Shown here: piece after piece, positions 2,550 through 45,186 of the stretch
Layout: each line of letters begins with the position of its first letter
Numbering within the stretch: position 1 is the stretch's first letter
Virus record (IMG/VR): IMGVR_UViG_3300027996_002186
Span: 124,001 to 188,000 of that record
Length of the DNA stretch: 64,000 nucleotides
Reading direction: 5' to 3' (one strand)
Program-made: the position numbers and the translations under genes
The notes under the pieces: generated by a model
Told to the model about the DNA's origin: nothing
The model's input: the letters and a program-made list of their open reading frames with translations, nothing else
Databases searched by the model: none

Positions 2550-2633
2550 ATGTTTGGTCGGATCTCCGAATTTGAGAGAAACCAAATAAGAAAACAGAAA
2601 ATAAATAAGATACTAAAAAACCCACTCAAATAA
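2550..2633 (+). CDS. Possible 27-aa ORF MFGRISEFERNQIRKQKINKILKNPLK carrying the RxxKINxIL motif
   Basis: Hand translation. Lies between gp55 and a terminator; motif shared with other ORFs. Confidence 0.4.
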   Translation: MFGRISEFERNQIRKQKINKILKNPLK

Positions 2634-2649
2634 ATGAGTGGGTTTTTTT
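2615..2649. terminator. Bidirectional intrinsic terminator
   Basis: aaaaaacccactca/tgagtgggtttttt stem between convergent genes. Confidence 0.85.
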
Positions 2650-2667
2650 ATTTAATATAAATTATAT

Positions 2668-3750
2668 TTATACTGAAACTGGTACTTCACTAAATATCGT
2701 CTCTAACATTCTTTCAGTAACTTGGTATGGGTCACAATTAGAAGCTGGTCTTCTATCTTCAAAATACCCTTTCTTATCAACAATTGATTGTGCTGGTATT
2801 CTAATACTTGTGTCTCTCGTACTGTAACCGTGTGTAAATTCGTGTATAGTTGAAGTTTCATGTTCTCCTGTCATTCTCTTATCATTCTCTAATCCATATA
2901 CTGCCATGTGCTCTTTGTGAGTTTCTTTTAATTTCATAACAGCTTCATCTATTAAAGATAATCCACCTTCTTCTCTCATTTCCTTTGTTGAGAAGTTAAC
3001 GTGACACCCTGATCCATTCCAATCACCAGTCATTGGCTTTGGGTGTAATGATACAATAACATTGTATTTTTCAGCTACCCTTTCTAATAAGTATCTAGAT
3101 ACCCACATTTGGTCACATCCATTTAGTGGTTTCACTGGTCCAATTTGATATTCCCATTGGCCTAACATAACTTCCGCATTTACTCCTGAGATGTCTAAAT
3201 CAATTTCTATACACATATTCATATGATCTTCAACTATACCTCTACCAACAACACTATCAGATCCTATACCACAATAATAATCTCCTTGTTGTCTTGGTTC
3301 ACCTTTTTCGAATCCTAATGGTAGTGCTCCATTCGTTCCAAATGGATTTCTATCTTTCTTCGTTAAAGTGTATTCTTGTTCCCATCCAAACCAAGGTAAT
3401 TCATCCTTTTCGATTGTTTCGTCTATACCTAGTTCTTCGATTTTTTCTTGTAGTTTGTTTCTGTGATTACTTTCGTGTTGTGTACCATCTGGGTTTAATA
3501 CCTCACAAAAAACTAATTTGTTTTGGTCACCTCTAAATGGGTCCTTAGTTATGAAAACTGGATTTAGTAAACAATCTGTATTCTTCCCCTTTCCCGCTTC
3601 TGCTTGTTTTGTTGAACTTCCATCAAATGACCACATTGAGTAGTCTTCCACTTTTAAGGAATCCTTTGTTTTAATTACTTTTGTTTTACTTCTTAGTTGT
3701 TGTGGATTTGACCCATCCAACCATATATACTCTAATTTAATATTTTGCAT
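2668..3750 (-). CDS. glnA: Glutamine synthetase type II (GSII)
   Basis: LEYIWLDG, WSFDGSST, EQEY, QWEYQIGP, HPKP, WNGSGCH, GYFEDRRP, DPY; about 360 aa, typical of GSII. Confidence 0.95.
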   Translation of the reverse strand: MQNIKLEYIWLDGSNPQQLRSKTKVIKTKDSLKVEDYSMWSFDGSSTKQAEAGKGKNTDCLLNPVFITKDPFRGDQNKLVFCEVLNPDGTQHESNHRNKLQEKIEELGIDETIEKDELPWFGWEQEYTLTKKDRNPFGTNGALPLGFEKGEPRQQGDYYCGIGSDSVVGRGIVEDHMNMCIEIDLDISGVNAEVMLGQWEYQIGPVKPLNGCDQMWVSRYLLERVAEKYNVIVSLHPKPMTGDWNGSGCHVNFSTKEMREEGGLSLIDEAVMKLKETHKEHMAVYGLENDKRMTGEHETSTIHEFTHGYSTRDTSIRIPAQSIVDKKGYFEDRRPASNCDPYQVTERMLETIFSEVPVSV

Positions 3751-3798
3751 AAAAATAGTTTTTGTTTTTGTTTTTATTTTTATTTTTACTTTTTTTTT

Positions 3799-3823
3799 AA
3801 ACTTTGTTTACTTTTTAATATAA
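3799..3823 (+). promoter_or_regulatory. Putative middle promoter AAAC-N16-TATAA
   Basis: Recurring motif upstream of 3847. Confidence 0.4.
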
Positions 3824-3846
3824 AAAAACATATATAAAATATAATT

Positions 3847-4143
3847 ATGAATAAAGTTATTTTACAAATATGGGAAGAATCAGAGAGGGGTCAAGGATCA
3901 CGGCCTGATGGTTGCTCTTTACACATTGATTTAAATAATCAAAAAAAATATGTAAAGGATTCTTATGAAGATAGAAGTGGTGATGTTCCTGATACCTATG
4001 AAAGAATTGTTGGTGATCCAATAGAGGCTTTTATTGATGATGGTTTATTTGATATTATCAATGAAGATAAAAATGTTAGATTATTTGAAAATGAGTTAAA
4101 TAATCTAATAAAAATGGAAGAAATTATAATAAATCATGATTAA
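3847..4143 (+). CDS. Hypothetical protein (98 aa)
   Basis: ORF with A-rich leader, overlapping the next gene. Confidence 0.7.
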   Translation: MNKVILQIWEESERGQGSRPDGCSLHIDLNNQKKYVKDSYEDRSGDVPDTYERIVGDPIEAFIDDGLFDIINEDKNVRLFENELNNLIKMEEIIINHD

Positions 4144-4477
4144 TGTATTTTACATATTACCTATTTTATTCATTTTTATGAATGTTTATCATATGCTTAA
4201 GAATAAGCAATTAGATAAGAGATTTAGAGAAAGAGATATAATTGGTATGTCAAGATTGGATATTATATATTATTTTACTAAAATTTCATATTGGATATGG
4301 GTACCAATTGGTTTCTTTACTAATCAACCAGAACTATTCTATGTATTATTTGTTTTGGGATTTTTGAAATTTCCCACTTACCATTTTAATAAAAATATTT
4401 TCAGGATCTATAATGATATATACCCAATTTTTTCTATATCCACACTAATTACAATTTTTTTTCATTGGTTGTTTTGA
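4136..4477 (+). CDS. Hypothetical membrane protein (about 4 TM)
   Basis: Several hydrophobic segments. Confidence 0.65.
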   Translation: MINVFYILPILFIFMNVYHMLKNKQLDKRFRERDIIGMSRLDIIYYFTKISYWIWVPIGFFTNQPELFYVLFVLGFLKFPTYHFNKNIFRIYNDIYPIFSISTLITIFFHWLF

Positions 4478-5310
4478 AATTCGTACCATTTTTCAATATT
4501 AATAGATTCTGATACATCAAAGTTTTTAAAATTCTTAATTCTTGGTAATCTACCTTTCCATTTTTTATTTAAAAATAATAGTTTGTTTTTATCAATTTTA
4601 CAATTTTTATTCGAAATACTACCCTCATTAAAAAGGTTTATCATTTCATCCATACTTAATGTTTTATGTTTTTTGTCAAAATTTGGATCCGGATGCGACC
4701 ATCCAAATTTTACTAACCAATTTAATAAAACTTCTTTACTATATTCTTTGTAATCCTCTGTTGTTCCATTACCAGTTCTTTTCGATAGTTTTTTATTACC
4801 TTCGAATAAAAGACCAGCATGTGTTATTTCTGGAAATTGTTTATCAGACTCAACCTCACAAATTTTATTCCATATTATTCTTTGTTTTATTTCATTAGAA
4901 ATATGATCTACACCTCTTACTATATTTGTTACGTCATAATCATAATCATCTAATATAGAAGAGAAGTTATAGGTTGGGAATCCATTATTTCTAAGTATAA
5001 CCATTTCATAACCACCCATATCTAACACATAACCCTTTTCAGTTTTCGTTCCGATTTTCTCAGCAACTTCTTTATATCTGTCTAATCTTTCTGATTGTCT
5101 AAATGTTATATCACTATCCAAACCAAATTTATTCATTTGATCATAGATATAATCTATCCATTCTGGTTTATTTCTTTCTTGATCGGTGTCATCAATACGT
5201 AGTATGAAAGTACCATTGTTAGCTTTAGCCATTAAATAGTTTAGCAATGCTGTTCTTAAAGTTCCTAAGTGGAATTGTCCTGTTGGTGACGGAGCTACTC
5301 TTGTTATCAT
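4462..5310 (-). CDS. Minimal glutamyl-tRNA synthetase-like protein (gltX-like catalytic core, shortened CP insertion, no anticodon-binding domain)
   Basis: RVAPSPTG, HLGT (HIGH), LRIDDTD, PTYNF, RGVDH, KLSKR (KMSKS), stem-contact GWS...KLLFLN; only 282 aa. Confidence 0.85.
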   Translation of the reverse strand: MITRVAPSPTGQFHLGTLRTALLNYLMAKANNGTFILRIDDTDQERNKPEWIDYIYDQMNKFGLDSDITFRQSERLDRYKEVAEKIGTKTEKGYVLDMGGYEMVILRNNGFPTYNFSSILDDYDYDVTNIVRGVDHISNEIKQRIIWNKICEVESDKQFPEITHAGLLFEGNKKLSKRTGNGTTEDYKEYSKEVLLNWLVKFGWSHPDPNFDKKHKTLSMDEMINLFNEGSISNKNCKIDKNKLLFLNKKWKGRLPRIKNFKNFDVSESINIEKWYEFQNNQ

Positions 5311-6643: not shown

Positions 6644-6655
6644 AAAATAATAATA

Positions 6656-8794: not shown

Positions 8795-8826
8795 AAACCT
8801 CTTAAAATTAATTAAGAGGTTTTTTT
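8795..8826. terminator. Bidirectional intrinsic terminator
   Basis: aaacctcttaa/ttaagaggttt stem between convergent genes. Confidence 0.75.
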
Positions 8827-9280
8827 ATGCCGCAGTTTTTGGGTCGGGTATATCAAAGTAAAATTGTGTTACGCTATTACAACTTGGAAGTTTCATTTGT
8901 TTAACTTCTAGTAAACACCCCGATTCTAATATGTTTTTTAATTCTTTACCTTTTGGTGTATCTAGAACTTTTAATACTATTTTTAACTCATCCACTTTAT
9001 TATTCGTTATGATAAAAGACATTGACCTAACAAAAAATGATATACTTTTTAATAATATATCAGAATATTCTGGTTTTCCTAAACTACCATATACCGGACT
9101 ATTTATTTTTGATATTTCGGTTACGTCAAATCCAATCCTTTTACCTTCGTTTAATAAAACATTAAGTTTTATCTCACGTTTATATTGTATCCATTGTGGA
9201 AATTTAGTTAGTAATCGATCATAGTTATTTAACTCAACATCATTTCCTAAAACAACATTATATTCTAGTAAATCATCCAT
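8825..9280 (-). CDS. Catalytically dead paralog of the gp21-type prohead protease
   Basis: VYGSLGKPE vs own protease VYGEFDHPD; KVLDTPKGKELKNILESGC vs KLLSTYWGKEAKALVDDGC; the VSSR motif is absent. Confidence 0.55.
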   Translation of the reverse strand: MDDLLEYNVVLGNDVELNNYDRLLTKFPQWIQYKREIKLNVLLNEGKRIGFDVTEISKINSPVYGSLGKPEYSDILLKSISFFVRSMSFIITNNKVDELKIVLKVLDTPKGKELKNILESGCLLEVKQMKLPSCNSVTQFYFDIPDPKTAA

Positions 9281-11184: not shown

Positions 11185-11194
11185 ATTCCTTTTA

Positions 11195-11596
11195 TTAGGA
11201 AATATCGTTTTGTTTATTATCGCGTTTGGATATGTTGTCAACACCGTACTTATCTATAAGTGTTTTTTTCATTTTTTTCAATATTTTATTGTTTTGTATT
11301 GGATAGTCAACACCGTAATTTTCTCTTAATGATTTTTTCCTTTTTGATTCTGAGCATTTTCTACAAGAGTATTCACCCCAGTTATTATCATATTTAATAT
11401 AGTTCTTGAATATTACATCCTTTTCGATTCCACATTTATCACACTTACACTTTATTTTATAGTGGGATCCTTTGGATAGTAATTCAACTGGTATTATTAA
11501 TAATTCACCAATTGTAACATCACTATATCCTAGATTTTCATAGTATGAATAGTTTGCTTCGCTTATTTTAACTTTTATCTCTCTAGTTATTATCAT
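11195..11596 (-). CDS. Zn-binding protein with YGVD repeats typical of phage homing-endonuclease N-termini, no nuclease domain
   Basis: CKCDKC, CRKC, ENYGVDYP, DKYGVDNIS. Confidence 0.5.
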   Translation of the reverse strand: MIITREIKVKISEANYSYYENLGYSDVTIGELLIIPVELLSKGSHYKIKCKCDKCGIEKDVIFKNYIKYDNNWGEYSCRKCSESKRKKSLRENYGVDYPIQNNKILKKMKKTLIDKYGVDNISKRDNKQNDIS

Positions 11597-11765: not shown

Positions 11766-13907
11766 ATGAAACCGGTTTTAATAGTAGAAAATTCACAAAA
11801 CCAACTTATTAGAGAGAGTAACTCTGCTAATAAGGGGTACACATTAGGTGGTACATTCACCGAATTCGGTGTCAAGAACAGAAATGAACGTATTTATTCG
11901 GCTGATAAATTTTTACCAGCATTGAATGAAATGAATGAACGTATAAGTGGCTTAGGTGCTGTTTATGGTGAATTCGATCATCCAGACGTTTTTGACACAT
12001 CACTCTCAAGAGCCTCGCATATTATCACAAAGGCAAGTTATATCCAAGAGAAAAATATCGTAGCGGGAGAGATTAAATTACTAAGTACTTACTGGGGTAA
12101 GGAAGCAAAAGCACTTGTCGATGACGGGTGTCCTGTATTCGTTTCTTCAAGAGCTGCTGGTATTACTGAATCTGATGGTTCAGTTTCCCTTAAAAAATTA
12201 TTTACTTATGACATTGTTGCTGACCCAGGATTTGCGTCAGCTAAAATGGATGTTAAGGTACTTAATGAGTCATTGGGATATAATGACGAAAAATCTAACT
12301 TTAGGATATATGAAATGTCCGATGAGTCAAAAATAAATGAGTTATTCAATATGAACAAAAATGAGTTTGTAACAAAAAAACAATTGACTGACTACTCTAA
12401 CTACTTAGTTAACGAATTAGCATCAACTAAGAAGACAGTTAATACAGCCATTACTAAAGGTAATGTAGCTCCAAAGAAATTGGAACAATTATTAGAGTAT
12501 TATGAAGAGTTAAACAACTCTAATTCAAAAGTAGCTAAGTATCTTGATTATTTATCAGAAAAGGTACAAATAGTAGTTAATGAGAATAAATCATTAAAGA
12601 AGACAACTGAGAAATTAGTTAAACATAATGATTATTTAGCAGAAAACTTAGAGAAATCTATTAATTACGCTGAGTATTTAGGTGAAAACTTAGATAAGAA
12701 CATTGATTATTCTGAGTATTTAGCTGAGAATTTAGACAAGAACATATCTTATGCTGAGTATTTAGCTGAGAATGTTGATAAAAACATTTCATATTCTGAG
12801 TATTTAGCTGAGAGTTTAGATAAGAACATTGCTTATTCTGAATATATCGCTGAGAATTTAGACAAAAACATCGCTTATTCTGAGTATATCGCTGAGAATT
12901 TAGACAAAAACATTGCTTACTCTGAGTATATCGCAGAAAACGTTGATAATAATATCGCTTATTCTGAATACTTATCTGAGCATGTTGAAGGTAACATTGC
13001 TTACTCTGAGTATATCGCAGAACATTTAGATGATAACATCGCTTATTCTGAGTATGTAGCAGAGAATCTTGACAAATCAATTAATTATCAAGGATTGATA
13101 GTTGAGAGATTAAACGGAGATAAATTATTTGAATCTGTTGAAGGATCTGAAAGCTTCCCATCTCTAGACGATGCTGGTTTTGAAGCTTTTGATGATGAAG
13201 AAAACAAAGATGAAGAAAATTGTAATCTTGAAGTATCATTAGATAATAATGATGAAGAAAATGGTGTTGAAGAATCTGTTGAGAATACAGATGATTACGC
13301 AACAGAAGAAAACAAAGATGAAGAAAATAAAGATGAAGAAAACAAAGAAGATAAAACTGAAAGCCATGATATGGTAAACGGTGATAGTGATTCTGAATTA
13401 TCTGAATCTATTGATAAACTAATTGAAGAAGCTAAAAAACGAAAAGTTTCTGAAACAACAGATGTGAATTTCTTGAAGTTCATGTCTAAATCACAAGTTG
13501 ACAGCTTTTACGCTTTGTCAAATGACGAACAAGAGTCAGTTAAAGTCCATATAAACGAAAGAGACTACTTTACTCAAAAAGATGTTTTGTTATTGATATC
13601 TGAAGCACTATCAACTAAGAACGAATCTCTTGAAGAGAGAATAATCAGATTGATGCCTGAAAACACAAAGCCAATCTGGGAACAATTAAACGACACTTCT
13701 AAGAAATCTATCTTGTCACAAGCTAGATTATATCCAGAAGACGTTTTAACTACTGAGGCACAAGTTGAACATTTTTGGTCAACTAGAAAGCTAAAGACAA
13801 ATGAGTCTGTAACAAAGAAACTTGTATCACATGAAAGCCTTATCCAAGAAGATAAACTTTCAGATAATGATGTTCAAGCGATAATGGAAAGATTCAAAAA
13901 TATTTAA
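11766..13907 (+). CDS. gp21: Prohead core protease (gp21-like) fused to scaffold protein (gp22-like)
   Basis: GVKNRNERIY, YGEFDHP, VSSRAAG, TYDIVADPGF, then coiled-coil 14-aa repeats and an acidic region; directly upstream of the MCP. Confidence 0.88.
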   Translation: MKPVLIVENSQNQLIRESNSANKGYTLGGTFTEFGVKNRNERIYSADKFLPALNEMNERISGLGAVYGEFDHPDVFDTSLSRASHIITKASYIQEKNIVAGEIKLLSTYWGKEAKALVDDGCPVFVSSRAAGITESDGSVSLKKLFTYDIVADPGFASAKMDVKVLNESLGYNDEKSNFRIYEMSDESKINELFNMNKNEFVTKKQLTDYSNYLVNELASTKKTVNTAITKGNVAPKKLEQLLEYYEELNNSNSKVAKYLDYLSEKVQIVVNENKSLKKTTEKLVKHNDYLAENLEKSINYAEYLGENLDKNIDYSEYLAENLDKNISYAEYLAENVDKNISYSEYLAESLDKNIAYSEYIAENLDKNIAYSEYIAENLDKNIAYSEYIAENVDNNIAYSEYLSEHVEGNIAYSEYIAEHLDDNIAYSEYVAENLDKSINYQGLIVERLNGDKLFESVEGSESFPSLDDAGFEAFDDEENKDEENCNLEVSLDNNDEENGVEESVENTDDYATEENKDEENKDEENKEDKTESHDMVNGDSDSELSESIDKLIEEAKKRKVSETTDVNFLKFMSKSQVDSFYALSNDEQESVKVHINERDYFTQKDVLLLISEALSTKNESLEERIIRLMPENTKPIWEQLNDTSKKSILSQARLYPEDVLTTEAQVEHFWSTRKLKTNESVTKKLVSHESLIQEDKLSDNDVQAIMERFKNI
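12627..13088 (+). repeat. 11 tandem 42-nt coding repeats (SEYIAENLDKNIAY consensus)
   Basis: 462 nt = 11 x 42, in frame, synonymous variation, no spacers. Confidence 0.92.
13305..13349 (+). repeat. 3 x 15-nt coding repeat (EENKD)
   Basis: gaagaaaa(c/t)aaagat units. Confidence 0.8.
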
Positions 13908-13992: not shown

Positions 13993-15723
13993 ATGTCACA
14001 CATTAGAATAGACAAACAAAAAGCTATGAAGAAATGGTCTCCAGTATTAGAGAACATGGGAGTTGCTGGTGAAGATAGATTGGATTGGATGTCAGAATAT
14101 GCTGAATTTCACTCAATCAATGAAAACGCTTACGCAAACGCTTCAAACGTATCGGGTATGGGAGCTGTAGTAGCTGCACAACCTAATTCATTAGCTGGTA
14201 ACACAATTGGCAATTACGCTGACTCAACTGGTTCAGGTGATGTTGGTCAAAACCTTTTACCGGTAGCGATGAAAATAGCAGCTCAAACAATCGGTTTAGA
14301 TTTAGTAGCTGTTAAACCTTCTCCAGGTCCAAAAATTGATTTATTATATATCGACTTTAGATATGATGATGCTCATTTAGGAGATTCAGACGAAAGACCA
14401 CAAGTCTTTAAGATTGCACCAAACGCTACATTTTTAACTACTGGTGCTGGTGGTATGACAGCAGTTATCGCTGGATTAAGAGCTCAATTAGCTACGAATA
14501 CAATCACTGAAACAGTTGGTGGTTTAACTGGTAGAATGTGGAATGATATCACAGATGGTTCAGATGTAGTTGTAGAACCAACACCTTCAAAAGAAGGAAA
14601 AGTTGAATTTTTAGGATTCTCTAGAATTGATGGTTATCCAATGTTCAGAGCTTACAGACAGATGAATACATCTCACACAGATGTTGGTTCAGCTCAAGCA
14701 AACTGGGGATTTGACCCGACTAGAAACACATTTAGTCCTACAATGTCAATGGCTTCTCAAATTACTGATTTAGGAGATGTTACTTTAACTGATGAGCCTA
14801 CTATTGAATTAGTATCAGCTCTTGAAGATCACATTCCTGGTTTCTCTGCAAACTGGATGTCGGATGCTACTGGCCCTGCTGGTAACTATCCAATGGATAG
14901 AGAAATGGACGATAAAAGATACTCTGGTATCATCGGACCAAAAATTAGTTCTAAAACAGTTGCCGTAGGTACTATTGAAGTATCTTCAGCTCTTAGAAGA
15001 ACTGAAATTGAAGATATCAAAGCTAACACTGGTATGGATATCGTTCAAAAAATGGAGTCAATTCTTGTTAATGAATTATCTCAAACAATCTCTAAGCAAA
15101 TTGTTGCTAAGATATTTGAAATGGGTTCACTTAACAGATTATCTGCACCAGCTTATGTTGGAACAGCACCGGCACCATTAGCGGGACAAACAATCTTTGA
15201 CTTAAACACAGCTTATGCAACTGTTGCTGCTGGTAATGGAAACGTTGGTGGTGAAACTACACACGCTGTTCAAAGAAAGCTTGTAACTAAGATAGCTCAC
15301 GCTTCTAACTACATCGCTACAGAGGGACGTGTTGGTCCAGCTCAATACCTTATTACAAATGGGGGATTAGCAGCAGCACTTTCTGATATCTCTGGTTATA
15401 CAATTAACCCAGTGAAATCAAAAATCAATGGTCAAGGTCAATTATACCCAGTAGGTTCAATTGGAGATATTTCAATATATGTTGATCCATATATGAGATA
15501 TAACGACAATAGAATTGCTCTTGGTAGAAAGAACAATCCAGATCAACCAGGTATTATTTTTGTACCTTACTTAATGGCTCAGTCTATATCTGTAATTTCT
15601 GAAGCGACTTTCGCTCCTAGAATGTTACTAAGATCTAGATACGCTGTAACAGAAGTTGGTTGGTTCCCACAAAAACAATTTATGACTATCGAAGTTACAG
15701 ATGTGAATACACTTCTTAACTAA
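13993..15723 (+). CDS. gp23: Major capsid protein (T4 gp23-like)
   Basis: KKWSPVLE, IAAQTIGLDLVAVKP, ILVNELSQTISKQIV, IYVDPY, FVPY, TFAPRMLLRSRYA; follows protease/scaffold. Confidence 0.92.
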   Translation: MSHIRIDKQKAMKKWSPVLENMGVAGEDRLDWMSEYAEFHSINENAYANASNVSGMGAVVAAQPNSLAGNTIGNYADSTGSGDVGQNLLPVAMKIAAQTIGLDLVAVKPSPGPKIDLLYIDFRYDDAHLGDSDERPQVFKIAPNATFLTTGAGGMTAVIAGLRAQLATNTITETVGGLTGRMWNDITDGSDVVVEPTPSKEGKVEFLGFSRIDGYPMFRAYRQMNTSHTDVGSAQANWGFDPTRNTFSPTMSMASQITDLGDVTLTDEPTIELVSALEDHIPGFSANWMSDATGPAGNYPMDREMDDKRYSGIIGPKISSKTVAVGTIEVSSALRRTEIEDIKANTGMDIVQKMESILVNELSQTISKQIVAKIFEMGSLNRLSAPAYVGTAPAPLAGQTIFDLNTAYATVAAGNGNVGGETTHAVQRKLVTKIAHASNYIATEGRVGPAQYLITNGGLAAALSDISGYTINPVKSKINGQGQLYPVGSIGDISIYVDPYMRYNDNRIALGRKNNPDQPGIIFVPYLMAQSISVISEATFAPRMLLRSRYAVTEVGWFPQKQFMTIEVTDVNTLLN

Positions 15724-19226: not shown

Positions 19227-20198
19227 ATGTCTGTTATTAGCTATTTTGGTGGCAAGTCCTCAAAGGTCTTCCATCAGTTCATCAACACAAGAATACCAAA
19301 AGATGGTATCAAAACTTATGTAGAACCATTCTCAGGTGCAATGGGAACGTATATGGATGACCCAAATCTTAAATTCGATACAGTTGTTTATAATGATAAG
19401 AACCGCCACCAGGTGAACTTATATAAGTGTTGTCAAAATCCAACAGAAATGTTGATACATATAGATAATCTAAAGAGTGGTTTATTACACACAACAGAAA
19501 CGGATCCAATAAAAAATTGGGATTTTTATAAAGCTATTTATAAGACATTTCAAAAGAATGATTTCTTAGATGATATGGATTTTGAGATTGGGGATTATGA
19601 AAAAGCTGCTATGTATGCTTTCTTAATTACATCAGCTCATAATTCAGTTTATCCAAGAGGAGCAGGGTTTAATGGTTATAAGAAGAATAATGGCAAACTT
19701 AAAATAGAAGCACTTGTTAATAAACTAAAGAAGGGTAAGTACACAGAGAAATTGGAATCAATTACTGAGTTCTATAATATTGATTTTGAGGAATTGATAA
19801 ACAAATATGATTCAGTAGATACATTTCTTTACTTAGACCCACCTTACGCTAGATTTGACGAGGCTAAAGGAATGGATGATGCTAGGAGACTATTCTGGTA
19901 TGGATGTGATGATGAAGGTGTCTTTGGACCCGAATCACATAGAAGGTTATTAGAAATGCTTAAAAAGACTGATTGTAGATGGTCATTATCTTATTATTAC
20001 TTTCCTTTATTAGAAGAATTATTACCAAGAGACCAATATAACTGGGTTGAGAAAGAAGTATTTAGAAGTTCTGCTCATGGTGGTAACAATTCGGATAATA
20101 AAAAGGTACAAGCTAAAGGTGTTGAGATGCTTATTATGAATTATAATCCAGAAACGGGAGAAAAAATCACTAATAAGGATGTCGAATGTGAACTTTAA
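19227..20198 (+). CDS. dam: Dam-like (D12 class) DNA adenine methyltransferase
   Basis: YFGGKS, YVEPFSGA, YND, FLYLDPPY, EMLIMNY. Confidence 0.88.
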   Translation: MSVISYFGGKSSKVFHQFINTRIPKDGIKTYVEPFSGAMGTYMDDPNLKFDTVVYNDKNRHQVNLYKCCQNPTEMLIHIDNLKSGLLHTTETDPIKNWDFYKAIYKTFQKNDFLDDMDFEIGDYEKAAMYAFLITSAHNSVYPRGAGFNGYKKNNGKLKIEALVNKLKKGKYTEKLESITEFYNIDFEELINKYDSVDTFLYLDPPYARFDEAKGMDDARRLFWYGCDDEGVFGPESHRRLLEMLKKTDCRWSLSYYYFPLLEELLPRDQYNWVEKEVFRSSAHGGNNSDNKKVQAKGVEMLIMNYNPETGEKITNKDVECEL

Positions 20199-20931
20199 GA
20201 TTGTTGATATTTTCGAGAGTGTTAAGGATGATATTTTTTCAATTCAACCATATTTATCTATTAATAATAATCTAAAAAATTTCACTACTAATACATTTAG
20301 TTTATCAATTCCGATGGAATTGGATGGGTTTGGTGTTGATACTGATGCTGAGATGATAAGTCTTATTAGGATTGAGATGAATCAAAGTATTTATAAAACA
20401 ATTTTGAAAGAATTATTCAATACTTCAAAATTTGATTATATAGATATTTCTAAAACTGTTAATACTCACCAATCTGTTAATGATATTATTGATTTTTTAT
20501 CTATTGATTGTATAGATAAAAAATATAAGTATTTAGTTACGAATACTTCTATGGCTAATTCAATAGGTGATAGTTCATTATTTAACTTTAAACCAAGTGC
20601 ATCGGTTGTAGAATCTCAAGGTTTACCATATTTATTTGGGTCTTTGATTAAATATGATGTTTATATAGATCCTTTTATGAAATTTGATGATAATAGAATT
20701 TGCTTATTTGATTCTTGTGAGATTAATATAGAGAATATAAATCAAACTGTTACATCAGCGGCCACATTTGCACCTAAGATGATGATAAGTTATGATGTGG
20801 CTTTTAAAATAGCAGACTCTAAGGTTATATTTGTTTTAGATGGTAATGAATCAAGTAGTTCTTATAAGCAATATAAACAATTACAGCGTGATATAAAAAT
20901 AAATTCTTTATTAGATGGCTCAACAGATTAA
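20179..20931 (+). CDS. Truncated, diverged paralog of the major capsid protein (250 aa)
   Basis: YLVTN, QGLPYLFGSL.....YIDPFMKFDDNRICL and SAATFAPKMM align with MCP YLITN, QGQLYPVGSI.....YVDPYMRYNDNRIAL and SEATFAPRML. Confidence 0.8.
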   Translation: MSNVNFKIVDIFESVKDDIFSIQPYLSINNNLKNFTTNTFSLSIPMELDGFGVDTDAEMISLIRIEMNQSIYKTILKELFNTSKFDYIDISKTVNTHQSVNDIIDFLSIDCIDKKYKYLVTNTSMANSIGDSSLFNFKPSASVVESQGLPYLFGSLIKYDVYIDPFMKFDDNRICLFDSCEINIENINQTVTSAATFAPKMMISYDVAFKIADSKVIFVLDGNESSSSYKQYKQLQRDIKINSLLDGSTD

Positions 20932-21136
20932 TAATACATTCCAGGTGAATTCGGCTTCTAATAAAAATGCTATTGTGGTTGATCCAGATGGATACACAAC
21001 TATTGATAAATTAATACTTGTTGATCAAAAAGATGGAACTAAGTGGGATTTTTCAATTTATGATGGTGAGGTATTAGTTGAGCCACATGGTAAATCAGAA
21101 AAAAGAGAATATAGAATCAATAAGGTTATTTCTTAA
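20915..21136 (+). CDS. Small hypothetical protein with C-terminal REYRINKVI motif
   Basis: ORF coupled to the MCP paralog. Confidence 0.65.
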   Translation: MAQQINNTFQVNSASNKNAIVVDPDGYTTIDKLILVDQKDGTKWDFSIYDGEVLVEPHGKSEKREYRINKVIS

Positions 21137-35894: not shown

Positions 35895-37223
35895 ATGAGC
35901 AAGTTAGTAACATTAAACGGGTTAAATGATGAAGAAATATTAAATGATATATTCATCGATGAGATAATTGTCCTTGAAGATATACAGGGAAGTAAAATAT
36001 GGGTTAATTGGGATGGTAAGCATTTTAATATCAAACCTAAATCTATATCAAATGAGTCAATAAATCTAATTGACTTAGCAATGCAAAATTATTATAATCC
36101 GGCTATCAATTATTTAAATTCATTAGATGATAGAACAAAAAGCCTTTTAAATAAAAAATGGTGGTTTTGTTTCGAGTATTTTCCTGATGAGCAACCTGCT
36201 AATATAGAGTATAATAGAGTTCCTAAGAATAATCTTGTTCTTACAGCTATTTCTAAGTCTAGAAAATATGAATTTACTATTGAAGAGTTAGATGAGTATT
36301 CTAGATTATTTAATGTTGATGTGGTGCCGGTTATATATCAAGGTACTTTGACCGAAAGTATGAAAGAAGCGATAAAGTATTTTATTAATACTAGTGAGGA
36401 TGATTTAGAGTATATTTTTGGTGAAAAGTCATTTGCATTCTTCTTTTATGGAATATTAAACCCATCAGTTAATAACTCTTTCTTAATGGATAATGAATTC
36501 CAAAATAATGTTGAGAAACTTATTATTAAGAGTAAAACAAAGGATATTTCATTTCAGTTATTAAATCCTTTATATAAAAGGTTGAGTGATGATAATCATA
36601 CAGACTTTGTTGAGATTTATACATTAATATTAATTAATTTCTTGAATTTTTCTCAATCTATTAATTTAGAAGATATTAAATTGAAAGGTGATAGAAAAGA
36701 TGAAGTTTACATATATTTAGTTTCTAAAATATTCAATGTTTATATATCGGAGGTCAAACAAGATTTACTTGACTTTGACTTTGTTGTTCCTGAATTCTTT
36801 GATAAGGATAAATTTAAGATAAATATTGAATTGATTAGTAATAAATTAACAAAGGATTATATAAAAGAGAGTGATAAATTAGAATATATTTTTAAGGTTA
36901 TTCTTGGATCTTTCAACAAGAAAAGAAAGAAACCAATTGGTATATTCACTGAGAATACAGTTAAGTTATTTAATAAATTTGTAGTTGATATCGATGATTA
37001 TATCGATACTTATTTAGGAAAACTACATGAAATTGAATTAGGTAGATCTGGTCTACTAGATTTCGGTGACTTCTTTGATATTCAATATGATACTGATGGA
37101 GAGGGTGAAGTTTATCCAGATGTTTACTCAGAGTTTTCTAAGACTGGTGGTCAGAACAAGAAGAAGAAAAAAGGTAAGGGTGGTAAATTCCCAATTGATC
37201 CAGGTAAAATTCCATTTAAATAA
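35895..37223 (+). CDS. RNA-ligase-like (Rnl2-type nucleotidyltransferase fold) protein lacking the adenylated Lys
   Basis: VLEDIQGS in place of EKxDGS; FCFEYF, VVPVIYQG, VEKLIIK resemble motifs III, IIIa and IV. Confidence 0.45.
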   Translation: MSKLVTLNGLNDEEILNDIFIDEIIVLEDIQGSKIWVNWDGKHFNIKPKSISNESINLIDLAMQNYYNPAINYLNSLDDRTKSLLNKKWWFCFEYFPDEQPANIEYNRVPKNNLVLTAISKSRKYEFTIEELDEYSRLFNVDVVPVIYQGTLTESMKEAIKYFINTSEDDLEYIFGEKSFAFFFYGILNPSVNNSFLMDNEFQNNVEKLIIKSKTKDISFQLLNPLYKRLSDDNHTDFVEIYTLILINFLNFSQSINLEDIKLKGDRKDEVYIYLVSKIFNVYISEVKQDLLDFDFVVPEFFDKDKFKINIELISNKLTKDYIKESDKLEYIFKVILGSFNKKRKKPIGIFTENTVKLFNKFVVDIDDYIDTYLGKLHEIELGRSGLLDFGDFFDIQYDTDGEGEVYPDVYSEFSKTGGQNKKKKKGKGGKFPIDPGKIPFK

Positions 37224-37414
37224 TGATTGATATTAAAATGACCTCTGTCGAGGTAAAGGCCGAAGTACGCGAACTAAAATGTAAATATACTCGTGAAATG
37301 GCTAAGGATATACACTATTATAGTGGTTTAGATCCTTTTAGTATGGATAATAGAAGAACAACAAGAAAAGATTCGATTAATAATATTTTTAATATAACAA
37401 AACATGATAAATAA
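37223..37414 (+). CDS. 63-aa mini-protein consisting of a gp23-like capsid segment plus the R..SINNIF motif
   Basis: VEVKAEVRELKCKYTREMAKDIHYYSGLD resembles T4 gp23 VIEAKSRQLKAAYSIELAQDLRAVHGMD; overlaps both neighbours. Confidence 0.65.
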   Translation: MIDIKMTSVEVKAEVRELKCKYTREMAKDIHYYSGLDPFSMDNRRTTRKDSINNIFNITKHDK

Positions 37415-38853: not shown

Positions 38854-39393
38854 GTGATTGATTTAACTAACCCCAAAATATCATATATTGTGATATCATC
38901 TGAAAAGATTGATGATATTATGTCAATTTTGTATGCTAAAAATTATCAAATTATACCGATAAAGGGTTATTATCAAGGTCAATATGAGGATTCATTGATG
39001 GCTTTTGGTGTTGATAATGATGAGTTAAGAAAAGATTTGATTTTTTTACTTAACCATTTTAGAGAGGATTGTGGTATAGTTAAATACTTTGGTGAGACCG
39101 GTGCTAAGAAAGTGTTCAAAGACGGCTCAGAGAAGCCCTTAGGTATCGTATTGTATAATACAGACTCAGATAACATTTCATATTTATATGATGGTATATC
39201 GTTCTCTTTTGTTGAACAAGTTAGATATTGGAAACCTAAGAATAAAGAAGATTTTTCTGTTGGTATGTTAGTTGAATATATGAATAATAATAAGTGGTAT
39301 GAAAAGGAAGTTATTAATCCATCAGAAGAATACCATAAGCTATATAAGCTTATGATAAAGTATGATAAGATTAGAGTAGCTACTACTAACTAA
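38854..39393 (+). CDS. Hypothetical protein (179 aa)
   Basis: GTG start 5 nt after TTAATATATA. Confidence 0.7.
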   Translation: MIDLTNPKISYIVISSEKIDDIMSILYAKNYQIIPIKGYYQGQYEDSLMAFGVDNDELRKDLIFLLNHFREDCGIVKYFGETGAKKVFKDGSEKPLGIVLYNTDSDNISYLYDGISFSFVEQVRYWKPKNKEDFSVGMLVEYMNNNKWYEKEVINPSEEYHKLYKLMIKYDKIRVATTN

Positions 39394-40189
39394 TCTCAAA
39401 CCAAACAATTCGATTCTCGAATGTTGGTGTTTCTTTTATAAAATAAGTTTGATAATTATCTCCGTTATTAACATTGTTAACAACATTTAATCCTGTACAT
39501 CTCTCACCTTTTGGTCTTACTCCGATTACTTTACTTGGATTTATTTTACTTGAGTGTATTACTTGAGCCCCATTTATATTACCTATGATGTCATCATAAT
39601 TATTTGATAAATTAAAATTATATGATGTTGATAATAAGTATTCTACTATATTATCTCCTATAATAAATGCGGTAGCGGGACCTAAGTTACTTTTCATAGA
39701 TAAAACATTACTAATAAATGTCATCTTTGTGATTATTCTTCTGGAATCAGCATCTGATTGTTCATTTGTTGTTAAAAATTTATCATTTTTTAATTTAAGA
39801 GTTACGTCTGTGTAAAATTTACATTTTTTCATTGGTTTACTTGTTAAAGTATCCAATGTTGATATAATATCATTATATAATAATGCTTCACTTATGAATT
39901 TTTTAGCAGTTACATTTTGCGACATCATTCTTGTTGAGAATGTTCCAATTGTATCCAACCCATCATAAATACCTTGCGGTAACCAATCCATATCATCATA
40001 TTCTTCTTGTTTTTCAGCAAGAACAGAATTTATAGATGATTGTCTATGTCTTCTTTTGAGTTCATTCATTATCCACTCATCATCAGATGATAAAGTATCC
40101 GTATAATAAATAACACCCTTGGGTAAAGAGGGTTTATTATTTTCTGTGTAATTACATATCAATTTTATATTAGACAGCAAGGTGCTCAT
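39386..40189 (-). CDS. Second diverged, truncated major-capsid-protein paralog
   Basis: SRRIITKMTFISNVLSMKSNLGPATAFI aligns with MCP QRKLVTKIAHASNYIATEGRVGPAQYLI; IGNING..V and VIGVR..GL.VV also align. Confidence 0.6.
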   Translation of the reverse strand: MSTLLSNIKLICNYTENNKPSLPKGVIYYTDTLSSDDEWIMNELKRRHRQSSINSVLAEKQEEYDDMDWLPQGIYDGLDTIGTFSTRMMSQNVTAKKFISEALLYNDIISTLDTLTSKPMKKCKFYTDVTLKLKNDKFLTTNEQSDADSRRIITKMTFISNVLSMKSNLGPATAFIIGDNIVEYLLSTSYNFNLSNNYDDIIGNINGAQVIHSSKINPSKVIGVRPKGERCTGLNVVNNVNNGDNYQTYFIKETPTFENRIVWFEIS

Positions 40190-41042: not shown

Positions 41043-41447
41043 ATGGATAAAAAAGTAGGAAGATTTGAAAAAATATTTTTTCCTGAACTAAATATAAAAG
41101 TGGATTCTAAAATAGACACTGGTGCTTATAGCGTTTCTTTACACGTTGAGGATATCAACGAAGTGGATGGTAAATTATACTTCTGGGTTGGTGATGAATC
41201 TAATAAATTCATATATGATGATTTTAATATTATTAGTGTTAAGAGTTCTTTTGGTAAAAATCAAAAAAGATATTCTATAAAATTGAAGATGCATCTGGGT
41301 AAACTTACCTATGATGTTTTCGTATCACTGAGTGATAGAAAAAAAATGAAGTTTCCTTGTTTGATAGGTAGAAAATTTCTACATAAACACGGATTTTTGG
41401 TAGATGTGAGAAAAAAGAATTTACATGATAGAAATAAAAAAATGTAA
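41043..41447 (+). CDS. Retropepsin-like putative protease (RimK-associated family)
   Basis: SKIDTGAYSVSLH, LSDRKKMKFPCLIGRKFL. Confidence 0.8.
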   Translation: MDKKVGRFEKIFFPELNIKVDSKIDTGAYSVSLHVEDINEVDGKLYFWVGDESNKFIYDDFNIISVKSSFGKNQKRYSIKLKMHLGKLTYDVFVSLSDRKKMKFPCLIGRKFLHKHGFLVDVRKKNLHDRNKKM

Positions 41448-41964
41448 TTATTTTACTGGTGATAATAGCATCTCTGATGGTATTAAAGATATTGTTAATT
41501 TTTTAGAATTATCAGGCAGAAATTATTTGCTATTAACTCCACCTAAAAATAGTGACATTGATAAATCAACACAAACAAATACAATAAAATATTATTTGGA
41601 TAATCAATTACACTTTAATAACTTTGTTGAGTTTGTTGATATTATAGAAAATGAAGGCAATTTATTTAGGGTTGATTTGTTGGTTTTGGATTTTTGGCAT
41701 TTAACACCTATTGAGATATCTATTTGGAAAAAAGAAATTGATAAATTGGGATTAGACCATTTGATAATAGCTAAAGAATATCACTATAAATCTACTGATG
41801 ATGTTACAGACTATCATCTTAGAAGAGAGTATAAAACGGTTGGTAAAAATGAATTATTTATAACTGATAATATAAATAAATGGACATCAACTTTAGAATC
41901 TTTAATAAAATCTTATAGAAGAGATAAGAAAATCAATGATATATTTGGTGGAACTGATAATTAG
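41425..41964 (+). CDS. Hypothetical protein, possibly a degenerate RecA-like fold; C-terminal RDKKINDIF motif
   Basis: RVDLLVLDFWHL resembles helicase KIDMIVVDYITL; no Walker A. Confidence 0.55.
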   Translation: MIEIKKCNYFTGDNSISDGIKDIVNFLELSGRNYLLLTPPKNSDIDKSTQTNTIKYYLDNQLHFNNFVEFVDIIENEGNLFRVDLLVLDFWHLTPIEISIWKKEIDKLGLDHLIIAKEYHYKSTDDVTDYHLRREYKTVGKNELFITDNINKWTSTLESLIKSYRRDKKINDIFGGTDN

Positions 41965-43607: not shown

Positions 43608-43756
43608 AATTTAGGGGTTTTATATTCTGGTTTATTTGCTATTATTAACATCTGTCCAGTTGTTAACTCATTATAATTCCAACCATTCTTTTTACAAAAG
43701 CCTATTATAAACCTCTCTCTTAGTATCGATTTTCCTTTATTTGCTTTCTTTTTCAT
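43604..43756 (-). CDS. 50-aa basic protein missed by the ORF track (MKKKANKGKSILRERF...PKL)
   Basis: Hand translation; ATGA overlap with 43607; fills the gap. Confidence 0.6.
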   Translation of the reverse strand: MKKKANKGKSILRERFIIGFCKKNGWNYNELTTGQMLIIANKPEYKTPKL

Positions 43757-43758
43757 AA

Positions 43759-44166
43759 TTAAATTAAAAATATATATATGAACACTTGTAAAGAAACACC
43801 AAATAAAACCATTGGTGTTTTCTTTTTATCTTGTTCTGAAGGTGGTAAATGCACATGTGTCTCTGTTATTGAATTTTTATCCAATTTTTTAATTGTTTGT
43901 TCAAATATTATTCTATGAAAATACTTGAACATAAAAATTTGTGCTATTATAAATGGTATTGATACCCATCCAATTGTATATGTTAATAATGTCCCAGTCG
44001 TTAATAACACTAAAAATCTTTGAATATTGAATATTTTTTTAGCACAAAATTCAGAACTCCTTTTATTTTTACTCTTGATATGTTCAAAAAAACCTTCCCG
44101 TAAACCTTCCGACATAGAATAAAGTATCCAGATTAAGTTTGTTATTGTTATTGCTATAAAATCCAT
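43759..44166 (-). CDS. Hypothetical membrane protein
   Basis: 3-4 hydrophobic segments; TTAATATATA (minus) at 44190-44199. Confidence 0.65.
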   Translation of the reverse strand: MDFIAITITNLIWILYSMSEGLREGFFEHIKSKNKRSSEFCAKKIFNIQRFLVLLTTGTLLTYTIGWVSIPFIIAQIFMFKYFHRIIFEQTIKKLDKNSITETHVHLPPSEQDKKKTPMVLFGVSLQVFIYIFLI

Positions 44167-44185
44167 ACTTATAAACTTCTGCTTT

Positions 44186-44217
44186 TTTGTATATATTAAA
44201 TATAATAACTATATTTG
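44186..44217 (+). promoter_or_regulatory. Bacteroidota sigma-A-type promoter TTTG-N20-TATATTTG
   Basis: Exact consensus; only 4 nt before ATG 44222. Confidence 0.55.
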
Positions 44218-44221
44218 TTGT

Positions 44222-44680
44222 ATGTTTGAAATAAAAGGTAAAATAGTATTCGATCCAATCGATAAAACTAAGAAGCACTCTAAGCAGTCTTCCTGGAAGA
44301 AAGTCGTTATGATCGAGTTCAAGGATGATACTTGGTCTTACTATTCTTGGTTTTTAAAAAAAAGATTTGGACTAGTCTTGAATAAACCACTTCGAGGAAC
44401 CCACTTTACTATTATTAACGATATTGTTGATGATGTAATATACAAACAAGCTAAGAAAATGTTTGATGGTACTGAAATAACAATTCAATACGATCCAACA
44501 AATATACGTTCTAATGATAAAGGTCACTGGTGGATAAAGGCTTATTCTGATGATGCTATAAATATAAGAAGTGTTATGGGATTGGGTGATCCTTATTTCG
44601 GTTTCCACATTACTATGGGATTAGCTACTAACACACAATTAGAACACTCTAAATATATTAAACAATATTTGAGATTGTAA
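44222..44680 (+). CDS. 2H phosphoesterase superfamily protein
   Basis: Two HxT motifs: GTHFTII and GFHITMG. Confidence 0.7.
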   Translation: MFEIKGKIVFDPIDKTKKHSKQSSWKKVVMIEFKDDTWSYYSWFLKKRFGLVLNKPLRGTHFTIINDIVDDVIYKQAKKMFDGTEITIQYDPTNIRSNDKGHWWIKAYSDDAINIRSVMGLGDPYFGFHITMGLATNTQLEHSKYIKQYLRL

Positions 44681-44705
44681 ACTAAAATAATAATACCACT
44701 ATAAT
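44679..44705 (+). promoter_or_regulatory. Putative middle promoter AAAC-N17-TATAAT
   Basis: Upstream of 44710/thyA. Confidence 0.5.
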
Positions 44706-44709
44706 CTAT

Positions 44710-45186
44710 GTGGTTAATAATCTAAGAAATATAATTATTGGTGATACCAATGTAGGAAAATCTACTTATTTGTATCAAATAGCAAACACATTAAATAAAT
44801 GTGGGTATTCGGTATGCCTTATTGATGGTGATGGGTCTGGTATATCAAACCCTATTGATAATGATGTTATAAACCTTGTGAATAAGAATGATGTTAGGTT
44901 ATTTAAGATGGTAAATAATATTGATGATATTGATGTTATTTTAATTGATGATATTGGATATTTATCTTCTGAGTGTATATCTGAGGTTTCTGATAGTAAA
45001 AAGGTTATTATATCAATTTGTTTCAAGGACTGGGGATCCAAACTGAATAAGTTTGTTGAAAAAAGTGAAATATTTAAATTGACTAAGACAACAATTGAGT
45101 ATAATAATTCTATTATAGATAGAAATGGATATTTATTACAATCAATAAGAGAAACAAAACTAAAATACTTATTAAATGAAAAATAG
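44710..45186 (+). CDS. Miniature P-loop NTPase (RecA/DnaB-like fragment) with C-terminal RETKLKYLL motif
   Basis: IIIGDTNVGKS Walker A, VILIDD Walker B; 158 aa. Confidence 0.65.
   Translation: MVNNLRNIIIGDTNVGKSTYLYQIANTLNKCGYSVCLIDGDGSGISNPIDNDVINLVNKNDVRLFKMVNNIDDIDVILIDDIGYLSSECISEVSDSKKVIISICFKDWGSKLNKFVEKSEIFKLTKTTIEYNNSIIDRNGYLLQSIRETKLKYLLNEK

Follow-up and report, generated by a model that had tools for sequence, protein, structure and literature searches.

A short C-terminal motif shared by about one in ten proteins of a megaphage lineage

INTRODUCTION

The tails of T4 gp43, gp55 and gp33 bind the sliding clamp through a hydrophobic peptide of the type [SL]-L-D-F-L-[FY] located within a few residues of the C-terminus; the PIP box of PCNA partners is analogous, and partners of the beta clamp use the sequence QL[SD]LF. 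A different kind of tag is the T4 capsid targeting sequence (CTS) of the internal proteins IPI-III and Alt. This is an N-terminal propeptide of 10-19 residues. T4 internal proteins pair a conserved tag with hypervariable bodies, and T4 propeptides are cleaved by gp21 (PMC9026906) at an L/I-x-E site. Encapsulin cargo-loading peptides and the C-terminal capsid-binding tails of the HK97 protease and the P22 scaffold bind the inside of an HK97-fold shell. C-terminal degrons of the ssrA/ClpX type are unstructured and have a fixed relation to the free carboxylate.

Here we analyse a motif of 9-13 residues (R-D-x-K-I-N-x-I-L) in a stretch of 64 000 nt (the window; positions 124,001 to 188,000 of IMG/VR record IMGVR_UViG_3300027996_002186) from a lineage of 0.6-Mb megaphages. 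A first-pass annotation made from the sequence alone had listed eight instances, usually at a terminus, and considered six of the carriers to be broken copies of essential proteins (i.e. three derived from the capsid protein, one dead prohead protease, and one or two helicase-like fragments). It proposed that these were tagged mimics made before the real proteins. ORFs are named below by their first coordinate in the window (Table 1).

RESULTS

The motif is real and is selected at the protein level

All eight instances are present at the positions that had been listed, so the observation is confirmed. Six lie 0-7 residues from the stop codon and two are N-proximal, and the description of the motif as usually terminal is therefore correct. 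The pattern used in the first-pass annotation gives 9 hits in 80 proxy genes of the window against 0.19 expected from residue shuffles, and 5 hits lie within 8 aa of a C-terminus against 0.0115 expected. The pattern was fitted after the fact, but orthologues give independent support. In the related genomes LR745206 (the nearest complete genome) and LR756502 every carrier keeps the motif while the remainder of the protein diverges; the key motif positions are identical at 38/42 (90%) compared with 609/1078 (56%) elsewhere (p = 4e-6). Two further hits that had been missed (17897 and 63680) are not conserved in orthologues and look like chance.

The third codon positions and the downstream DNA carry no information, and the arginine is kept through both AGA and CGN codons. 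In the family of 41425 the motif is retained in 117 of 120 homologues, down to 45% identity, with Arg and Ile invariant. It is modelled as the end of a helix in the two carriers for which models were examined (39386 and 41425). The consensus is K-[SQ]-x-[IL]-R-[DE]-x-K-[IL]-[NDK]-x-[IL]-[LFI], and a variant tail (R-T-E-L-I-D-x-I-L) is present in LR756501.

Table 1. Coordinates of motif carriers and related features in the window
Position	Strand	Feature	Motif
2163..2528	+	gp55-like late sigma factor lacking the C-terminal tail that T4 gp55 has	
2550..2633	+	Tiny ORF (27 aa), directly after the gp55-like gene and before a terminator hairpin	2589-2615(+); at the end of the ORF
8825..9280	-	Prohead-protease paralogue (151 aa), catalytic His and Ser regions lost	9152-9178(-); N-proximal (aa 35-43), followed by L-N-E
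11766..13907	+	Genuine prohead protease fused to a scaffold with about 12 repeats of a 14-aa unit; parent of the 8825 paralogue	None
13993..15723	+	Genuine gp23-type major capsid protein (MCP); parent of the capsid-like paralogues	None
20179..20931	+	Paralogue of the C-terminal 2/5 of the capsid protein (spine helix to C-terminus)	20887-20913(+); C-terminal
20915..21136	+	73-aa orphan	21104-21130(+); one residue from the C-terminus
37223..37414	+	63-aa ORF; only weak capsid-protein similarity	37364-37390(+); C-terminal
39386..40189	-	Complete small HK97-fold paralogue (267 aa)	40019-40045(-); ends an N-terminal helix (aa 49-57), then invariant L-x-E and a low-confidence linker
41425..41964	+	RecA/KaiC-like fold without a Walker A motif	41920-41946(+); end of the terminal helix 157-174
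44710..45186	+	Small P-loop NTPase (Walker A present)	45148-45174(+); C-terminal
47954..49492	+	N-terminal half of a split family-B DNA polymerase; the C-terminal half, encoded elsewhere in the genome, carries the motif-like tail	
50293-52077		XPD/DinG-like helicase	51145..51171(+); internal motif-like site (RDLKLSKLF), significance uncertain

Relationship of the carriers to core phage proteins

Profile and fold comparison with the capsid protein, the prohead protease and the helicase had been named in advance as the means of testing the proposed homologies, and these mostly hold. Alignment of 20179 to the MCP by hhalign gave a probability of 98.9% (E 2e-17) over MCP aa 344-551. For 39386 the sequence link is weak (E 1e-3), but the best PDB match of its AF2 model found by Foldseek is T4 gp23, followed by HK97 and gp24 (E 3e-8 to 1e-5). 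It is a whole small HK97 fold and not a broken copy. ORF 37223 gave only weak hits to Gp23 and phrog_138 (E 1e-4 and 2e-3) and an hhalign E of 0.086, which leaves its membership of the HK97-fold family undecided. ORF 8825 is homologous to the prohead protease (peptidase S77; probability 90.9%, E 1e-6), but EFDHPD is replaced by SLGKPE and the Ser region is not conserved. It is a relative and not an active member. The model of 41425 has a RecA/RadA/KaiC-like fold, while 44710 gave only generic P-loop hits; neither has a sequence link to the DnaB-like helicase of the phage (hhalign E 0.058 and 0.11), and the proposed link to gp41 fails. A search of the ESM Atlas with 20915 found nothing.

The sequence AAAC-N16-18-TATA[AT] lies upstream of the operons that contain 20179/20915, 39386, 41425 and 44710, as had been claimed, and also of PolB and the DnaB-like gene. 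Head and tail genes instead have ATATATA 28-38 nt upstream.

Distribution of the motif in related genomes

Whether the motif keeps company with degenerate core-gene copies in related genomes had also been set out as a test, and the outcome was that it does not mark such copies. In LR745206 there are 123 hits, against 5.7 in shuffled and 7 in reversed proteins. Of these, 99 are C-terminal (in a total of 1057 proteins), against 0.3 and 1 respectively, and none lies within 8 residues of an N-terminus. In other parts of LR756502 the motif is found in 15 of 117 and 4-6 of 74 genes. Nearly all of the 99 proteins are unrelated orphans. Only 9 of 123 carriers have any paralogue once the motif is masked, and the larger C-terminal carriers have no Pfam hit. 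Of the ten largest carriers overall, six have Pfam hits and four of those are nucleic-acid enzymes (i.e. UvsW-like and XPD-like helicases, an RNA ligase and a weak PolyA_pol-type nucleotidyltransferase hit), although in the helicases and the ligase the motif is internal and could be a chance match.

Carriers are depleted in the late-type promoter, which is found for 15% of them compared with 41% of other small proteins (p = 5e-7). Their bodies evolve fast, with a median identity of 56% against 79.5% (p = 0.0025), and they are soluble, with a TM-like segment in 5 of 96. Paralogues derived from head proteins carry the motif more often than average (7 of 10 against 12% overall, p = 2e-5), although only 3 of 6 do so in the set that was found without reference to the motif. 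The MCP has at least 5-8 partial paralogues per genome, more than any other parent. Fragments of about 17 other large proteins lack the motif, as do the genuine scaffold, MCP and portal.

Similarity to the clamp-binding tails of T4

T4 gp43 ends ...SLDFLFG and gp55 ends ...SLDFLYEAND (read from AF158101). The motif core K-[IL]-[ND]-x-[IL]-[LF] has the same [SK]-[LI]-[DN]-x-[LI]-[FLY] spacing and the same near-terminal position, and thus conforms to the form of a T4-type clamp-binding peptide. The C-terminal half of PolB, read in LR745206 (the copy belonging to the genome studied here lies outside the window), ends in [KR]-R-L-S-V-V-M-D-I-F-[GS]-G. This is conserved across all 120 listed homologues apart from a few single substitutions, and shares the skeleton R-x3-[ILV]-x2-I-F-G with the ...RRDKKINDIFGG of 41425. 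The polar signature (D1, K3, N5) is absent, however, and the tail was not found by the motif HMM. The chance rate of the skeleton in a tail is 0.8%, but since 14% of proteins carry the skeleton a chance overlap is not negligible, so that the polymerase tail does not decide the matter in either direction.

The gp55-like protein matches phrog_234 (late sigma transcription factor; E 1.9e-7, profile positions 10-123 of 181) and is 100% identical to that of LR745206. It ends in two stop codons, followed by 33 in-frame codons that hold the motif. In LR745206 the adjacent tiny ORF is 53 aa long with its own ATG in the +1 frame, whereas in the window deletions of 6 and 22 nt leave a 27-aa restart; the tail is identical at the protein level despite synonymous changes. 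The motif is therefore next to the late factor and not on it, which leaves its association with late-transcription factors unsettled, and no homologue of gp33 was sought. A T4-type clamp loader is present (phrog_168, E 1.5e-45). No clamp gene was identified, and the 236-aa ORF next to the loader has no hits, so that only half of the expected clamp and loader pair was observed.

DISCUSSION

The analysis demonstrates that the motif is selected as protein and is attached to unrelated, soluble, fast-evolving and mostly non-late small proteins in about 10% of the proteome of this lineage (the genome of the window, LR745206, LR756502 and many metagenomic relatives). That the carriers use it to bind one common partner, through the invariant Arg, the Lys and three aliphatic residues, is an inference. 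We tentatively suggest that the partner is the T4-type sliding clamp of the phage. The motif would then be the version of the clamp-binding tail in this lineage, acting as an address label that concentrates tagged proteins on clamp-loaded, replicating phage DNA. The form of the core, the polymerase tail, the tiny tagged ORF that directly follows the gp55-like gene, the clamp loader and the nucleic-acid enzymes among the large carriers are consistent with this. However, binding was not assayed or predicted here, about 100 mostly orphan clamp partners would be unprecedented for a phage, and there is no obvious reason for proteins derived from the capsid, scaffold and protease to bind a clamp. 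The capsid-, protease- and RecA-like paralogues are a real but minority subset of the tagged proteins.

Other explanations are possible, though each seems less likely. The tag could dock its carriers on another hub, encoded by phage or host (for example RNA polymerase, the ribosome, a chaperone, a replication factory or a compartment scaffold), with the resemblance to clamp-binding tails being coincidental. The evidence for a modular, conserved docking helix on unrelated proteins serves this equally, no clamp was found, and the polymerase tail matches only the hydrophobic skeleton; yet no candidate hub emerged (the two giant ORFs have no internal repeats), and the coincidences of the polymerase tail and the neighbour of gp55 would be unexplained. 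Still less likely is a signal for targeting to the prohead core or capsid, with the carriers being internal or ejected proteins. The enrichment of head-derived paralogues favours this, and the N-proximal motifs followed by L-x-E fit a capsid-targeting propeptide better than a clamp tail. L-x-E is invariant in the 39386 family, where a flexible linker follows, and is found in two of three orthologues of 8825, and the scaffold is full of I-A-E sites. But Glu follows only about 20% of C-terminal tags, so that the observations on cleavage sites point both ways. Most tags are C-terminal with no useful cleavage site, carriers lack the expected co-expression with head genes, the genuine head proteins named above lack the motif, and about 100 cargo species is a very large number; the protein content of virions was not examined. 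A degron or timer that hands early proteins to a protease once they are no longer wanted is unlikely. The C-terminal position, the non-late expression and the potentially harmful inactive copies of assembly proteins would suit it, but the distance to the free end varies from 0 to 8 residues, about 20% of sites are internal or N-proximal, the tag is helical in the models and continuous with a folded domain, and its conservation is stronger than known degrons need. No dedicated protease was identified.

The proposal that the carriers are non-functional mimics, made early to titrate host sensors or poison the assembly of a rival phage, is partly supported. The motif is a genuine, selected, terminal signal, several carriers are inactive or minimal relatives of capsid, protease and RecA-fold proteins that are conserved, and most are in non-late transcription units. 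Bacterial Avs sensors recognize the core folds of MCP and RecA-fold ATPases (bioRxiv 10.64898/2026.01.04.697583). However, the motif does not define a set of mimics, more than 90% of carriers show no relation to any core protein, no sensor or target is known for these uncultured phages, and a decoy that binds a sensor would be expected to trigger it. Nothing in our analysis examines a decoy or titration function, which is not required by the data, and we consider it very unlikely; the suggestion of a docking or localization signal is the part that we retain. It is possible, though improbable, that more than 100 fast-evolving early proteins, including catalytically dead or minimal copies of the capsid protein, scaffold, prohead protease and RecA-fold ATPases, are all sent to a single platform, either clamps loaded on phage DNA or an unknown hub or compartment, where the copies of core proteins act as regulators, decoys or poison subunits. 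Chance or a compositional artefact of an AT-rich genome, or a DNA or RNA signal at gene ends, is excluded. K, I, N and L are very common at 30% GC, but there is a roughly 300-fold excess over shuffles at C-termini with none at N-termini or in reversed proteins, in addition to the free third positions and the conservation across homologues.

Most genes of huge phages are orphans with no handle for study, and a conserved tag on about 10% of the proteome gives a direct experimental entry point, in that identification of the partner could assign about 100 unknown proteins to one pathway or location. If the partner is the sliding clamp this would be by far the largest clamp interactome known in any virus, and a way to tell phage DNA from host DNA. 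The repeated, conserved mini-copies of the capsid protein, up to a complete 267-aa HK97 fold under a non-late promoter type, are themselves unexplained.

Compared with the clamp-binding tails, the motif has the same [LI]-[DN]-x-[LI]-[FL] spacing a few residues from the C-terminus and is similarly modular, but has an additional conserved R-[DE]-x-K N-terminal half, is predicted to be alpha-helical, and is carried by about 100 proteins rather than a handful of replication and transcription factors. It resembles the T4 CTS as a short conserved tag on otherwise hypervariable small proteins of a T4-like phage, and in two head-derived carriers it is N-proximal and followed by L-x-E, yet 80% of tags are C-terminal and carriers avoid the promoter type of head genes. 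Encapsulin cargo peptides and the tails of the HK97 protease and P22 scaffold are also C-terminal, but differ in sequence pattern; the small HK97-fold paralogue 39386 carries the tag itself, and there is no evidence that it forms shells. Like T4 gp24, 39386 and 20179 are HK97-fold or gp23-derived paralogues encoded apart from the MCP gene, but they are much smaller, fast-evolving and driven by a non-late promoter type, and one covers only part of the fold.

Genomic context

The window is about 30% GC and 93% coding in the standard code. Stop-codon recoding was considered as the source of the apparent protein fragments, but the standard code already gives this coverage and reading TGA or TAG as sense adds little. 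The closest deposited relatives are the unannotated records LR745206 (634,780 bp; 86% protein identity for one test gene) and LR756502 (642,428 bp), while LR756501/3, LR756504 and LR756500 are more distant. These phages are uncultured. The four largest genomes reported by Al-Shayeb et al. 2020 are of 634, 636, 642 and 735 kb; that paper places its largest genomes in the 'Mahaphage' clade and predicts Bacteroidetes hosts for those over 634 kb (PMC7162821).

The window holds a T4-like head module, together with tail genes, replication genes and many small ORFs. The portal protein ends in a roughly 60-residue Gly/Asp/Glu-rich acidic tail finishing in EFEF. The scaffold-like region fused to the prohead protease contains about 12 tandem 14-aa repeats (…YSEYIAENLDKNIA…), each ending in an I-A-E site like those cut by T4 gp21, and the N-terminus of the MCP has a similar S-E-Y-A-E-F. 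A 1274-aa Ala/Gly/Leu-rich protein with hydrophobic segments, apparently a tape measure, is only 44% identical to its LR745206 orthologue, while its neighbours are about 75-85% identical. The family-B DNA polymerase is split into two genes that are about 100 kb apart in the relative, the exonuclease and N-terminal palm half lying in the window and the C-terminal half elsewhere. The class I RNR large subunit has no syntenic orthologue in LR745206 (the best hit is 26% identical and lies elsewhere), and a 282-aa gene has its orthologue about 170 kb away in LR745206; both are local gene gain or movement in an otherwise collinear region. The window also carries cargo that is unusual for a phage: an RNase II/R inside the head module, a Ro60/TROVE protein, a glutamine-synthetase-like enzyme, a NADAR domain protein and a PF05618 'zinc protease'.

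Coordinates of features in the window and in the related genomes
Feature	Sequence	Coordinates	Strand
gp55-like late sigma gene	window	2163-2528	
gp55-like late sigma gene with the tagged tail that follows	window	2163-2633	
Glutamine-synthetase-like enzyme	window	2668-3750	-
282-aa gene	window	4462-5310	-
Portal	window	7080-8777	
RNase II/R	window	9280-11244	-
Prohead protease fused to repeat-rich scaffold	window	11766-13907	
gp23-type MCP	window	13993-15723	
NADAR domain protein	window	18656-19132	
Apparent tape measure	window	31227-35051	-
PF05618 'zinc protease'	window	41043-41447	
PolB, N-terminal half	window	47954-49492	
XPD-like and DnaB-like helicases	window		
Class I RNR large subunit	window	56326-58869	
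Ro60/TROVE protein	window	59385-60836	
PolB, C-terminal half	LR745206	130568-131992	-
Protein resembling single-strand DNA-binding proteins	LR745206	182319-182906	
Array of small ORFs with variant tail	LR756501 240001-290000 (segment L016)	34127-38528 of L016	-

Conservation of the motif

The observation made in the first-pass annotation is confirmed, in that all eight instances of the motif (R-x-x-K-I-N-x-I-L and variants) lie where it had placed them. Its pattern gives nine hits in 80 proxy genes against 0.19 in shuffles, with five at a C-terminus against 0.0115. Orthologues in LR745206 and LR756502 keep the motif while the remainder diverges; constrained motif positions are 90% identical against 56% for other residues (p = 4e-6). 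Two extra pattern hits, in the ORFs at 17582 and 63177, are not conserved and are thus ascribed to chance. The 179-aa carrier 41425 (carriers are named by their position in the window) has 153 metagenomic homologues down to 45% identity. Of 120 of these, 117 end in K-S-Y-I-R-D-K-K-I-[DE]-x-[LI]-F, with Arg and Ile invariant.

The signal is in the protein and not in the DNA. Arg is encoded by both AGA and CGN, third codon positions carry almost no information and nothing is conserved downstream. This rules out a DNA or RNA signal at gene ends.

Distribution of the motif in related genomes

We scanned 1057 proxy genes (i.e. sets based on ORFs) covering the whole of LR745206. A relaxed core pattern hits 123 times, with 99 hits lying within 8 residues of a C-terminus and none within 8 of an N-terminus. 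The corresponding totals and C-terminal counts are 5.7 and 0.3 in shuffles, and 7 and 1 in reversed proteins. Other parts of LR756502 show the same density, with 15 of 117 and 4-6 of 74 genes. The carriers have a median length of 105 aa and are soluble. When the motif is masked only 9 of 123 have any paralogue, so that the carriers do not form one large paralogous family, and the larger C-terminal carriers have no Pfam hits. The motif is therefore a modular tag on about 10% of the proteome, and not a mark of core-gene copies.

Carriers evolve faster than their neighbours (56% against 79.5% identity, p = 0.0025). Three promoter-like classes are visible in the window, upstream of 7080, 11766, 13993, 23250, 31227(-) and others. 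TAATATATA lies 28-38 nt before structural genes, AAAC-N16-18-TATA[AT] lies before PolB, the DnaB-like gene and several small-gene operons, and TA..TTTG lies before many small ORFs. The carriers avoid the ATATATA element that lies 28-38 nt upstream of head and tail genes (15% against 41% of other small proteins, p = 5e-7). They are enriched for TA..TTTG-type sites (42% against 28%), which resemble the Bacteroidetes -7 promoter element, while enrichment for AAAC-N16-18-TATA[AT] sites is weaker (23% against 15%, p = 0.055). Note that these classes are consensus matches whose timing is inferred; no read or RNA data were examined. The first-pass annotation had placed most of the carriers it listed under the AAAC-type promoter and not the late one.

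The strict motif is absent from the syntenic 50 kb of the more distant LR756501, LR756504 and LR756500. LR756501 has a rarer variant, R-T-E-L-I-D-x-[IM]-L, that is found mostly in one array of about 10 small ORFs ending in R-T-[EK]-L-I-D-x-[IM]-[LTC]. A 196-aa mini-MCP, matching MCP aa 5-98 and 314-373, is embedded in this array.

Carriers that resemble core phage proteins

The first-pass annotation had taken several carriers to be broken copies of capsid, prohead protease and helicase proteins, and had proposed profile searches and structure prediction to examine this. In these comparisons carrier 20179 is homologous to MCP residues 344-551 (probability 98.9%). Carrier 39386, which has 13 homologues, folds in the model with a mean pLDDT of 75, and its best PDB match is T4 gp23 (E 3e-8), followed by HK97 and gp24. 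It is a complete 267-aa HK97 fold. The motif ends an N-terminal helix of 39386, and is followed by an invariant L-x-E and a low-confidence linker. Carrier 8825 is a prohead-protease relative (probability 90.9%) without the catalytic His and Ser regions, while 37223 is only weakly capsid-like. Carrier 41425 is modelled (pLDDT 84) as a RecA/RadA/KaiC-like core lacking a Walker A motif, with the motif forming the end of its terminal helix. It has no sequence link to the DnaB-like helicase of the phage or to 44710, another carrier.

Across the genome the MCP has at least 5-8 partial paralogues, more than any other parent, and a scaffold-repeat fragment and a protease fragment also exist. Seven of ten head-derived paralogues carry the motif against 12% overall (p = 2e-5), although this falls to 3 of 6 for those found without reference to the motif. 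Fragments of about 17 other large proteins lack it. The C-terminus of the MCP itself is not the origin of the motif, as it is not conserved among MCP orthologues. The association is real but covers well under 10% of carriers, and the interpretation offered in the first-pass annotation is supported only in part.

Possible role of the tag

The existence, constraint and wide distribution of the tag come directly from the sequences, whereas what it does is inferred and has not been shown. Several simple options fit poorly, including a DNA signal, a single protein family and a classical degron. A membrane-binding amphipathic helix was rejected because the bodies are soluble, the polar residues are conserved and, on inspection, Arg lies on the hydrophobic face. 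Giant ORFs were considered as repeat-bearing receptors, but no repeats were found in them.

The best lead is provided by the sliding clamp. T4 gp43 and gp55 (read from AF158101) end in ...SLDFLFG and ...SLDFLYEAND; these are their gp45-clamp-binding tails. The motif core K-[IL]-[ND]-x-[IL]-[LF] has the same spacing and position. The C-terminal half of the family-B polymerase in LR745206 (Pfam DNA_pol_B, E 2.7e-21) ends in ...[KR]RLSVVMDIF[GS]G, and this tail is conserved, apart from a few single substitutions, in all 120 listed homologues. It shares R-x3-[ILV]-x2-I-F-G with the ...RRDKKINDIFGG of 41425. That skeleton occurs in 0.8% of shuffled tails, but in 14% of real ones.

The gp55-like late sigma (phrog_234, E 1.9e-7; 100% identical to LR745206) covers only profile positions 10-123 of 181, and is followed immediately by the tiny tagged ORF. 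The sigma gene ends in two consecutive stops (TAA TAA), after which come 33 in-frame codons carrying the motif. In LR745206 the same tail belongs to a 53-aa ORF with its own ATG in the +1 frame, overlapping the sigma gene; deletions of 6 and 22 nt in the window broke that ORF and left a 27-aa restart. A T4-type clamp loader lies just left of the syntenic region. Near it in LR745206 is a 195-aa protein resembling single-strand DNA-binding proteins (phrog_6015, E 2e-4), with a strongly acidic C-terminal tail.

We therefore rank a sliding-clamp-binding address tag first, but only tentatively. No clamp gene was found, a sequence search of the PDB for a clamp returning nothing useful. Moreover, the polymerase tail lacks the polar half of the motif, and nothing explains why capsid-derived proteins would bind a clamp. 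Docking on another hub is possible but doubtful. A capsid-targeting role like that of the T4 CTS is less likely again, yet it fits some facts: head-derived carriers are enriched, L-x-E sites follow the N-proximal motifs, the scaffold repeats end in I-A-E, and T4 internal proteins also pair a conserved tag with hypervariable bodies (PMC9026906). By contrast the promoter data, the C-terminal position, and the absence of the motif from scaffold, MCP and portal stand against it. A T4-like N-terminal CTS ([DE]-[FYW]-[ILVM]-[AS]-E) was found only in the scaffold repeats, the MCP N-terminus and a few ORFs. A degron is unlikely, and the system of decoys proposed in the first-pass annotation, in which non-functional mimics titrate host sensors or poison the assembly of a competing phage, is the least likely of these readings.

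Comparison with known systems

The multiple mini-capsid paralogues are a second oddity, separate from the tag. We found no description of such a tag in full-text literature searches, and searches of the ESM Atlas returned nothing useful. Terminal docking or sorting peptides are already known, as in clamp-binding tails, the PIP box, the CTS and encapsulin cargo peptides. A version spread over about 100 orphan proteins of the largest known phages is new in scale and in sequence.
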